DNA of 64,000 bases from Anthoceros angustus (Eukaryota; Plantae; Anthocerotophyta). The translations under genes were made by a program, and so were the position numbers. The notes under the pieces are model-generated. The model had not been told where the DNA came from. It ran no database searches and saw only the letters and a list, made by a program, of their open reading frames with translations. Positions 1,130 through 11,867 of this stretch are shown piece after piece; position 1 is the stretch's first letter; every line of letters begins with the position of its first letter. The stretch spans positions 1-64,000 of the forward strand of contig MU008228.1 of assembly GCA_010909165.1 (NCBI GenBank), in the 5' to 3' direction.

Positions 1130-2050
1130 GGGATTGATGACCCGACGCTTGCTCACCGCGAGAATGCATGATCATGTTGGTAATGACCGGTGTGCAATCA
1201 AGAAAAAATGATACAAGTAGTGGACGATGTCGCTTTGTTGCAAGGAAGTGTGTGATAGCTAGACTCGAGCGACTTGGAGAGAAACGAGGTGCGTGGTGCA
1301 CGCCGTTTTAGTTGCAATGATACATAAGGGTGTGTGATGTGGAGACGTATAATGGACGCGCCGGTGGTCAGAAATGCGTGAGTTTGTGGCGGCCGAGATC
1401 GAAAACGATGCTCATCAAATGGATGCACTGCTTGCCTCGCTATTCGCCGGTCAAGGGCAAGGGCCTCTTTTGAATGCGCTTTCCGATCGGATGAGGGGCG
1501 ATTTTTGCCGCTCCCTCCGCCATCGCTGGATTGCTTGTCGGGAATGATGAACATCCGCTTGAGGGTTCTCATTGCTGCGCCAATACATAGTATGGCACCT
1601 CAGAAGCGGTCGCAGCGACTGGACACGCGCTACCACGGTTTTTTTTTTGCGATTGCTAGAAAATGGTGCTATGAGGTACATATGGTGCATAAGCACGATT
1701 CTATGGTGACGCCGGATTTGCAGATCGGGTGGATCAAGACGGGTCACAATCAAAGACCGCACTTCTTGCTGATTGTGATAGGACGCCTAACTATGTACCA
1801 ACCGTGGACAAGGAATAGCTACACCGCATGCCTTCTGCTGAATCAGTGGTGCACGATACAAATGTGATATTTTGGCACCAAGGAGGGTCATCTTGGATCT
1901 CTCACATAGCGCTTATGGAATAAGAGACCTATGGTCCGGACTTCAAAATCCTTCCATGGGATTCGGACTTTAACATCTCTCAAACATCATCTTTGTTGAA
2001 ATGACCTCACCATGTGCAAAATTTTGCATTTATGCGATGTAGTCTAGATA
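1130..2050. repeat. Divergent copy of an unidentified repeat (X), also at ~5100-7110 and ~13600-15607
   Basis: Shared blocks include CAAGGGCCTCTTT...CTCCGCCATCGCT, ACAAATGTGATAT...CCAAGGAGGG...GGATCTCTCACA, and a common end TTTATGCGATGTAGTCTAG followed by TATC repeats. Confidence 0.75.
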
Positions 2051-3600
2051 TTCATCTATCTATCATTCATCTATCTATCTATCTATCTATCTATCTATCT
2101 ATCTATCTATCTATCTATCTATCTATCTATCTATCTATCTATCTATCTATTCTATCTATCTATTCATTCATCTATCTATCTATCTATCTATCTATCTATC
2201 TATCTATCTATCTATCTATCATTCATCATTCATCTATCTATCTATTCATTCATCTATTCATTCTATCTATCTATCTATCTATTCATCTATCTATCTATCT
2301 ATCATTCATCTATCTATCTATCTATTCTATCTATCTATCTATCTATCTATCTATCTATCTATCTATCTATTCATTCATCTATCTATCTATCTTCTATCTA
2401 TCTATCTATCTATATTCATCTATCTATTCATCTATTCATTCATCTATCTATCTATCTATTCATCTATCTATCTATCTATCTATCTATCTATCTATCTATC
2501 TATCTATCATCTATCTATCCATGTCTATCTATCTATCATTCATCTATCTATCCATTCATCTATCTATCTATCTATCTTCTATCTTCTATCATTCTATCTA
2601 TCTTCATATCTATCTATCTATCTATCTATCATTCTATCTATCTATCTATCATTCATTCATCTATCTATCTATCTATCTATCTATCTATCTATCTATCTAT
2701 CTATCTATCTATCTATCATTCATCTATCTATCTATCTATCTATCTATCTATCTATCTATCTATCTATCTTCTATCTATCTATCTATCTATCTATTCATTC
2801 ATTCATTCATCTATCTATCTATCTATCTATCTATTCATCTATCTATCTATCTATCTATTCATCTATCTATCTATTCATCTATCTATCATTCATCTATTCA
2901 TCTATCTATCTATCTATCTATCTATCTATCTATCATTCATCTATTCATCTATCTATCTATCTATCTATCTATCTATCTATCTATCTATCTATCTATCTAT
3001 TCATCTATCTATCTATCTATCTATCTATCTATCATCTATCTATCTATCTATCTATCTATCTATCTATCTATCATCTATCTATCTATCTATTCATCTATCT
3101 ATCTATTCATTCATCTATCTATCTATCTATCTATCTATCTATTCATCTATCTATCTATCTATCTATCTATCTATCTATCTATCTATCTATCTATCTATCT
3201 ATCTATCTATCTATTCATTCATCTATCTATCTATCTTCATCTATCTATCTATCTATCATCTATCTATCTATCTATCTATCTATCTATTCATCTATCTATC
3301 TATCTATCTATTCATCTATCTATCTATCTATCTATCTTCTATCTATCATTCATCTATCTATCTATTCATTCATCTATCATTCATCTATCTATCTATCTAT
3401 CTATCTATCTATCTATCTATCTATCTATCTATCTATCTATCTATTCATCTATCTATCTATTCATCTATCTATCTATTCATCTATCTATCTATCTATCTAT
3501 CTATCTATCTATCTATCTATCTATCTATCTATCTATCTATCTATCTATCTATCTATCTATCTATCTATCTATCTATCTATCTATCTATCTATCCATCTAT
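2050..3600 (+). repeat. ~1.55-kb (TATC)n/(GATA)n microsatellite with interspersed CATT/ATTC variant units
   Basis: Seen directly in the sequence. Confidence 0.99.
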
Positions 3601-10100: not shown

Positions 10101-11162
10101 ATGACACGTGAGCAAAACTAAAACCTTATGGGTGAAATACTCTCACCCGCAAGTTTTTGTGATTACAAGTGGGTTTATGATACACCTAGTTGCACCACTG
10201 GACCATGGATCCCTCTCCCATACGAGAGACTCCTAAGTCTCCACTTATGGCTTATGCAAAACTGCAATGTCCAGCTTGGAAACCACGCCTGGTTGCAAAC
10301 CTCGGGCATCCCAATGGGCTTTTCATGCTCTCCACTTTGGTGCAACTTGTACTTCTTCTCCTATGAATGCCGCTTCATTCAACGCCTAGCACGACTAGGA
10401 AGAACCGATCTAATGGCACTGCTCAAAGAAGCTAGAAGATACATTGATGATATCGGCTCAACCGCCACCGCTCACGAATTCTTGGACCCTAATGCTAAGC
10501 GTGATCCCGACAATCCCTATTGGATCTACCCCTCCACATTGTTGAAATCCAACAAGAGGTGGATGAAACTTACCTAATCCGAGGGCATCACACTTGGAAA
10601 GTCGGCCCACTTTCTAAACATGCAAATTCATATTGAGGATCCCATCCTTGGAATTTATAAGACCTATAAGTTTGACAAACGAAGGGCTCTCCCATTCAAA
10701 TATGCACAATACATCCACTTGAACTCTAATAGACCAATTCGCCAAGCATACAATGTAATTGTGTCTCAAGTGTTCCCTATCCTCTATGTATCTAGTGAGG
10801 CCTCACTAGCCTACATAGAACTCATGGAACTTATTAAAGCCTTCATCAACAATGGCTTTAGGAACACAAGCTTAAAACCATTGTTAAAAATGCTTAATGC
10901 TTGGAACCTTCCTGGTCTTAAGTTCCCAATTGAGGATCTTGTTAGCATGTTCAATTAATTTCCCACATAACTTCTCTCTATGGGATGGTTAGATAGATTT
11001 ATGTATATGATGCTTCATGCATCATGTTTTTTCTGTCATTTTATTACAATTATATTTCCTTTTGGCGGTGGTATATATCCTTGGATCAAGGGCATTTGTA
11101 TACCTCATTTGCCCCCGATCCAAAAGGAATATATTTGTAAATTCAACCACGGAGAGTGGAGG
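7121..11162 (+). mobile_element. Penelope-like retroelement (probably Naiad/Chlamys-type), frameshifted, flanked by short TATC tracts
   Basis: RT motifs: L-DKAN (~9568), YLMGIFKQHK, DITRCYEAIP (10009-10038), QTSGIPMGFSCSPLWCNLYFFSYE (~10296), RYIDD (~10436), thumb FDKRRALPF...SNRP...YNVIVSQ (ORF 10620-10958). TATC tracts at 7110-7120 and 11163-11190. Confidence 0.85.
9540..10958 (+). pseudogene. PLE reverse transcriptase core and thumb, frameshifted
   Basis: ORFs 10128-10577 and 10620-10958 plus upstream fragments carry the RT motifs in the expected order. Confidence 0.9.
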
Positions 11163-11867
11163 TATCTATCTATCTATCTATCCATCTATCCAAGAGAGAG
11201 TTATGTTCCCTATGAGATCCATGAATTTGCCCTTTGTGTGCCCATAGATTGGTGCTTCTAAATGATGTTTATCCATCCCAAACATCCCATCGATGAACTA
11301 AGTAAATCTATTCCTTCAATGTTTACGTAATACTAATTTGTGAAGGAATTTTTATTGATTTTATTTATTATTTACCCTTTATTATTTTCTTACTAATATG
11401 GTTGTTTTCCTTGATTTTTGAGATAAATTTTAATTCAAGATAGTCTAATATGTATGCAGGTTTTATTTGTTTTTGGATAATAAACTTGGAAGCGTGATGT
11501 TTACAAGTATCTTTCATATGTTTTGTTTTTGACCTTAGAGAGGTATCTAACCCATAAAAATGCACCATTAGACTCTTGATAACTATGGAGTGAATAGAAT
11601 ATGAATATGCTTGCCTTTTTCCAACTCGGCTATCACCTTTTAATGGTAGAAGGACATAGTGCCTTACCCACTTGGGCATATTATAATTAACACCTCATAT
11701 GGGCCATGTGTACATTTATGACCTCGGACCTTGTTTCACTTTTAATATATACTACTAGGCTATAAATGAGGGATCCCTATGTGCATGTTTGTTAAAGATG
11801 GGTTGATTCCTTGTGGGTTATCATTGGTAGGAATGGCTGCCCAATAGGATTATATAACTTGTGAGCC

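Follow-up and report, generated by a model that had tools for sequence, protein, structure and literature searches.

Penelope-like elements (PLEs) of the Naiad/Chlamys clade are diagnosed by an N-terminal nuclease, a CxC motif, a DK(A) motif, a long stretch between motifs A and B of the reverse transcriptase (RT), the C-terminal position of the RT and the absence of a hammerhead ribozyme; they are also known to be biased towards the microsatellites (TA)n, (CA)n and (C)n, to occur in tandem and to have non-autonomous partners (PMC8557442). Nuclease-less families of the same clade that carry a CxCX1-8C extension, named PLE-X, were described with hammerheads from Selaginella and Chara, and BLASTP matches in mosses were mentioned (Craig et al., 2021, PMC8557442). 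How a nuclease-less PLE-X inserts at interstitial sites is an open point, and the endonuclease-less (EN−) PLEs that attach to telomeres carry short reverse-complement telomeric repeats (PMC8557442). Here we analysed positions 1 to 64,000 (forward strand) of contig MU008228.1 of Anthoceros angustus (assembly GCA_010909165.1), hereafter the window, in which a 4,041-bp insert at 7122-11162 is a dead PLE. The reading that we favour, with a probability of about 0.7, is that this nuclease-less, hammerhead-less PLE of the Naiad/Chlamys clade forms one link in a head-to-tail chain joined by TATC repeats.

Analysis of the insert (PLE1) showed a coding region full of stops and frameshifts, with a longest open reading frame (ORF) of at most 151 codons. 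Pfam returned only a weak RVT_1 match, which spanned 158 residues against 91 profile positions and would fit an insertion between RT motifs A and B; these motifs were spaced by about 99 codons in PLE1. A translated piece of 151 residues (10122-10574) had 47 relatives, with E values down to 5e-40 and identities of 46-60%. Homology to the ORF1 and ORF2 of relatives extended from 8127 to 10955 and took in the ORF1 motif IIWFD (8212), GLDKA (9563-9577), RT motif A (DITRCYEAIP, 10009), motif B (GIPMGF, 10305) and motif C (RYIDD, 10437), with the ORF ending at 10958. Within ORF1 the homology was limited to residues 317-419, leaving the start of this ORF uncertain; IIWFD was kept, and the adjacent CxCX1-8C motif had decayed to PYIKCIRQ. 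The 5' part of PLE1 also contains a 100-bp tandem duplication (7718-7901; 1.8 copies, 97% matches by Tandem Repeats Finder, TRF) that is absent from the second copy of the element in the window (PLE2), which is dead as well.

Relatives were obtained by a scan of metagenome contigs, which yielded 22 loci (labelled L0xx). Two of them, L002 and L005, are intact two-ORF elements. Their ORF1 (565-577 amino acids) contains a CxCX7-8C motif, the sequence IIWFDHAIW and an RG-rich tail, the CxC-type motifs in the ORF1 of the relatives being CLCNPRATSGC and CGCPLNGPKDAC. Their ORF2 (735-737 amino acids) carries a CxC motif (CPCN or CICN), GLDKASNN and then the RT motifs, namely A (ADITRCYE), B (GIPMGFSCSP) and C (RYIDD), beyond which it continues for about 170 residues. 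Across the relatives the CxC motif reads CPCN, CICN or CHCN and is followed by KRF, and GLDKASNN is invariant. A distant homologue, L020 (tblastn E value of 2.6e-33 to the ORF2 of L005), has one intact ORF of 938 codons (142-2955) with an N-terminal GIY-YIG domain (31.5 bits vs. a Pfam cut-off of 22.6), after which come CHCN, IDKASNN and the RT. We regard the assignment of the insert to the PLEs as settled because of this distant homologue and the motifs. The insert had also been called a PLE when it was read from the sequence alone (hereafter the sequence-only reading), and the relatives, the DKA motif and RT motifs A-C agree with that call. L020 itself represents an EN+ PLE of the Naiad/Chlamys type, and its metagenome contig belongs to another sample series (Ga0115008).

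Judged by motifs and homology, the insert most resembles the PLE-X type and would belong among the EN− members of the Naiad/Chlamys clade. Pfam detected no GIY-YIG nuclease in the pieces from the window or in ORF1 and ORF2 of the intact relatives, and Rfam detected no hammerhead ribozyme at E≤5 in positions 1-20000 of the window or at E≤1 in nine relatives. A sequence search of the PDB with P0055 gave no match at E≤10, and the AlphaFold model of ORF1, built from five sequences, was too poor for a fold comparison (predicted local distance difference test score of 40). The family shares with PLE-X the C-terminal RT, DK(A) and (in the relatives) a CxC region upstream of it, what may be the long stretch between motifs A and B, the lack of GIY-YIG, an upstream CxCX1-8C motif (in the ORF1 of the relatives) and its occurrence in early-diverging green plants. 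It differs in that no canonical hammerhead was found in the window or the relatives, whereas the PLE-X families are said to have them, in that its joint or target is a TATC microsatellite rather than 28S ribosomal DNA, and in that the ORF1 of the relatives is a separate ORF.

The layout of the locus is given in Table 1. Its units follow one another head to tail in the order R0-(TATC)390-R1-(ATCT)3-PLE1-(TATC)7-R2-(ATCT)3-PLE2, in which R denotes a non-coding block. The long array between R0 and R1 is an imperfect (TATC)n of 1.55 kb and the sole tetranucleotide array that TRF found in the window (391.8 copies of period 4, 86% matches); it could be parsed into 308 ATCT, 55 ATTC and 17 ATC units, with a longest perfect run of 28 units. 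The sequence TATCTATCTATC was observed 192 times in the window vs. 0.00 expected. All copies but one lie on the plus strand, either within this array or at 11163-11182, and the lone minus-strand copy is at 12678 in R2. At the second junction the order is ...GTAGTCTAGG-AA-ATCTATCTATCT, then the insert TGCTCTTC...GAGTGGAGG, then TATCTATCTATCTATCTATCCATCTAT and then CCAAGAGAGAG, and at the third junction the ATCT run is followed by TGTTCTGTTCTTGG....

Table 1. Features of the TATC-joined chain at the start of the window.
Feature	Position	Strand	Basis
R0, older and diverged block copy (3' part), ending ...GCGATGTAGTCTAG (X1)	1-2046	+	collinear patches 67-76% identical to R1/R2
Imperfect (TATC)n array, about 390 units among which ATTC and ATC variants recur, at the R0/R1 joint	2054-3601	+	TRF, sequence, unit parse
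R1, non-coding block of about 3.5 kb, starting CCAAGAGAGAG (Y) and ending GTAGTCTAGG (X2)	3602-7107	+	sequence; ORFs without Pfam match; repeated as R2
AA + (ATCT)3 joint upstream of the PLE 5' end	7108-7121	+	sequence
PLE1, decayed 4,041-bp Penelope-like element with ORF1-like and ORF2/RT regions, 3' end ...AACCACGGAGAGTGGAGG	7122-11162	+	homology, motifs, TRF
About 7 TATC units at the PLE1 3' end, identical to the final 27 bp of the large array	11163-11189	+	sequence comparison
R2, second copy of the block, with an internal 887-bp tandem duplication	11190-15606	+	self-comparison
(ATCT)3 joint, same as 7110-7121	15607-15618	+	sequence
PLE2, copy of PLE1 that stops where PLE1 has position 10190, with unrelated repetitive DNA beyond	15619-18694	+	self-comparison

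Self-comparison showed that R and PLE together form a 7.6-kb unit that occurs twice (3574-11162 vs. 11163-18694), with 80-100% identity overall and 87-94% by BLAST segment. The R-(ATCT)3-PLE joints of both units are identical, and PLE1 and PLE2 share 92% of their aligned bases, with 79 indels between them. A tract of about 1 kb that begins within the TATC run (3574-4560 vs. 11163-12150) is 99-100% identical, compared to 80-93% in the remainder of the unit, and its first part (3574-3873 vs. 11163-11462), which holds the start of Y after both arrays, is 100% identical. This tract probably reflects recent gene conversion or exchange starting in the microsatellite, and it may also be a polishing artefact. 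Collinear patches of R0, a much older relative of R, match R1 at 67-76% identity (1145-1435 with 6071-6367; 1787-2047 with 6845-7106), and both blocks end at GTAGTCTAG, ahead of a TATC-type repeat. None of the ORFs in R matched Pfam; R may be a passenger unit in its own right or, alternatively, may make up the long 5' part of a full-length element of 7.6 kb. Within R2, the duplicated segments (11869-12755 and 12756-13644) are about 92% identical and meet on a 9-bp microhomology, CGGTTGGAT; towards the end of the first duplicate there is a GATAGATAGATA run, i.e., three TATC units on the minus strand (12678-12689).

The sequence-only reading had described an array between X and Y, a second X-ATCTATCTATCT-PLE-TATC-Y junction and a third X-TATC-PLE junction, all of which are present, and had taken the first two as an empty site beside a filled one. 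The latter interpretation could not be maintained: the first junction joins R0 to R1, and its X1 (1787-2047) has no more than 73% identity with X2 and X3. The common start of Y is real, but it lies within the homogenised tract of about 1 kb and offers no independent evidence for insertion at the same site. Likewise, X-ATCT-PLE does recur at the third junction, but as part of the repeat; since the 7.6-kb unit occurs twice, this junction is the second one copied, and one PLE insertion is documented. On the chain reading, X and Y mark where chain units end, and a true empty site does not exist.

Both termini of PLE1 adjoin TATC repeats on the sense strand of the element, and the joint sequences bear out what had been noted earlier on this point; at the 3' end, TATC stands immediately next to ...AACCACGGAGAGTGGAGG. 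In all six of the close relatives L001-L006 (complete or nearly complete elements of two families, about 70% identical in DNA), (CT)n with n of 4-21 was found directly at a G-rich 3' end, which reads ...ACCAGGGG...GGTGGAGGGC in L001 and L002, ...GGTGGTGGGTC in L003 and ...ACCACCAAGGG...GTGGGA in L004-L006. The repeat was followed by the 5' end of a next element in five of the six, and L002 was flanked by (TC)n at both sides. The 5' ends of the relatives (CTTCTTGATTT or GCTCTTGATTTTG) and that of PLE1 (CTCTTCTTGGTTTGG) have the motif CTTCTTGRTTT in common. A third family (L018, L021) begins immediately after (CA)n. Ranked by best segment, L018 and L019 were the closest relatives; both were decayed and AT-rich and showed no clear 3' microsatellite. 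The earlier proposal that the family targets (TATC)n/(GATA)n was thus borne out as far as a microsatellite association in the relatives is concerned, but for TATC itself the window provides a single insertion.

Hairpins were predicted at the 3' end, with z scores of -3.2 in the window and -3.6 to -5.4 in L004-L006. The predicted hairpin of the latter family takes in the first CU units, which suggests that its RNA carries some repeat. A conserved hairpin in the 3' untranslated region, GGTGCACTC...GAGTGCACC, lies at 3437-3532 in L004, 5495-5593 in L005 and 1428-1530 in L006; after it comes a terminal stem formed between an upstream GAGAGTC and GACTCTC, the latter representing the initial units of the (CT)n tail. 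The contig of L002 (1-5512) holds one intact two-ORF PLE of 5,365 bp, and its ends overlap exactly (4-120 = 5396-5512). Given this overlap and the (TC)n on both sides, L002 represents a head-to-tail array that has been collapsed or else a circle.

With the EN+ Chlamys and Naiad elements the family shares ends that lie within microsatellites, so that no target-site duplication is visible, as well as head-to-tail and partial tandem copies and the lack of a hammerhead. Those elements have an N-terminal GIY-YIG domain, and their preference is for (CA)n, (C)n or (TA)n, whereas the family in the window has no nuclease and is joined to a tetranucleotide repeat. Non-autonomous partners occur in Chlamydomonas, but R, unlike those partners, has no 3'-end similarity to the PLE. 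The EN− telomeric PLEs Athena and Coprina also lack a nuclease. They carry reverse-complement telomeric repeats and hammerheads and sit at chromosome ends, whereas the PLE in the window adjoins TATC, which is not a telomere-type repeat, has no ribozyme, and nothing shows a terminal position on a chromosome for it. Microsatellite tails or targets are also found among retrotransposons without long terminal repeats (non-LTR), such as UnaL2 with its (TGTAA)n tail and Kibi, Koshi and Waldo of the R1 clade; these elements encode an endonuclease, and pairing or slippage of the tail is thought to set their site. They resemble the present family in having a family-specific simple repeat at the 3' junction and differ from it in their RT lineage and in their endonuclease. 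The family is a TATC-associated addition to a known kind of element, i.e., the EN− PLEs of the Naiad/Chlamys clade with their microsatellite bias.

The two R+PLE units probably stem from a single event, either a DNA-level tandem duplication through exchange between flanking TATC runs or one composite unit, with the conversion tract of about 1 kb superimposed on both of them afterwards. For the insertion of the PLE we propose a priming scheme modelled on the telomere-attaching EN− PLEs. The RNA would carry (UAUC)n at its 3' end, and this tail would pair with (GATA)n whose own 3' end is exposed within a TATC/GATA array at a nick, break or fork; such a DNA end would prime reverse transcription without any nuclease of the element's own. 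As each inserted copy would bring an array with it, new copies would land beside old ones and chains would form; alternatively, chains could arise by template jumping of the RT at the repeats. A lineage with a conserved 3' end on a family-specific repeat and with chains thus provides a testable hypothesis, namely that reverse transcription is primed when the RNA tail pairs with a microsatellite end that lies exposed. The window copy is dead and, alone, adds one event to this.

Several points weigh against the reading of the locus as a chain of EN− PLEs. Only the one independent PLE insertion is visible in the window. The CxC region reads LMCPSQKRF in both window copies, its first cysteine being absent, and the PLE is nuclease-less as far as Pfam, on which that statement is based, can tell. 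The 5' motif that PLE1 has in common with the relatives is short, and in none of the relatives was a clean host flank present, which makes a target and a self-made 3' tail inseparable. As for R, it showed no significant similarity to either end of the PLE and had no DNA relative among the 22 fetched loci, and its putative mobility is based on three copies in one tandem region.

It is possible, though we consider it doubtful, that R belongs to a 7.6-kb element R-(ATCT)3-ORF1-ORF2 as its long untranslated or promoter region at the 5' end, in which case 3602-11162 and 11190-18694 would be two full-length elements head to tail and R0 would be a solo R, either the remnant of an exchange involving flanking TATC runs or the product of priming at the internal (AUCU)3. 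The repeat period, which equals R plus PLE, and the R-(ATCT)3-PLE joint, identical in both units, are as this would predict; moreover, in relatives a long stretch separates the microsatellite from ORF1 (about 0.95 kb for L002, about 2.4 kb for L006), and an ORF1 start extrapolated from the relatives falls within about 100 bp of 7122, leaving almost no 5' untranslated region. That start is, however, uncertain given how little of ORF1 could be aligned, and no internal microsatellite occurs in the 5' region of the relatives. The 5' end of the PLE at 7122 (TGCTCTTCTTGGTTTGG) is also similar to the 5' ends found after the microsatellite in relatives such as L006 (ATCTACTTCTTGATTT) and L003 (...GCTCTTGATTTTG), which favours 7122 as a true 5' terminus. 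If X...Y were instead host DNA, a tandem segmental repeat spaced by TATC of which one spacer was hit by the PLE, X1-(TATC)n-Y1 would be an unoccupied paralogue of X2-PLE-Y2. Deletion of 7121-11162 does restore a TATC run in phase, X1 and X2 both end in GTAGTCTAG plus a TATC-type repeat, and R resembles the PLE neither in coding sequence nor at its ends. We nevertheless consider host DNA unlikely: X1 and X2 are only 73% identical while Y1 and Y2 are 100% identical, in a conversion-like tract, and the relatives are arranged as element-microsatellite-element. In addition, Y2 is best seen as a copy of Y1 from duplication of R+PLE and is therefore not the original neighbour of X2.

The arrangement could also be in part an assembly artefact, with repeats collapsed or mis-joined around the long microsatellite, and the tract of 99-100% identity over about 1 kb beside the microsatellite, in units that otherwise diverge by about 10%, as well as a lone N at 19341, would fit this. 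The diverged parts nonetheless carry correlated substitutions and indels like real old copies, the junction sequences are consistent between the units, and similar architectures occur in independent metagenome contigs, so that we give an artefact hardly any chance. The sequence-only reading had further speculated that the RT helps to extend the arrays. In its full form this would mean that the TATC runs, the 1.55-kb array included, were made and lengthened by reiterative copying of a short RNA 3' template in the manner of telomerase slippage. The RTs of PLEs form the sister group of telomerase RTs (PMC8557442), a conserved 3' end adjoins directly, in each family, a repeat specific to that family, and the RNA of L004-L006 probably carries some repeat, as its predicted hairpin includes CU units. 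Yet the repeats at PLE ends are short (3-7 units in the window, 4-21 in the relatives), the long array is enclosed by two R blocks and does not touch the PLE, both PLE copies are dead, and the ATTC and ATC variants fit ordinary slippage and unequal exchange equally well. The speculation is thus unsupported here and highly improbable for the runs in the window. The more general idea that the microsatellites at the joints were written by the telomerase-related RT, and that nuclease-less PLEs create and lengthen their own landing-pad arrays, is very unlikely too; if true, it would constitute an interstitial, microsatellite-based counterpart of telomere addition.

Outside the chain, the DNA that follows the break in PLE2 (18695-20100) is unrelated to the element and contains degenerate tandem repeats of the GGACGGACCACC type (19427-19641); it may represent another inserted element or an assembly joint. 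Further along the window, at 29600-37700 and 62200-64000, repeated units of about 90 bp and about 300 bp occur in tandemly duplicated genes.

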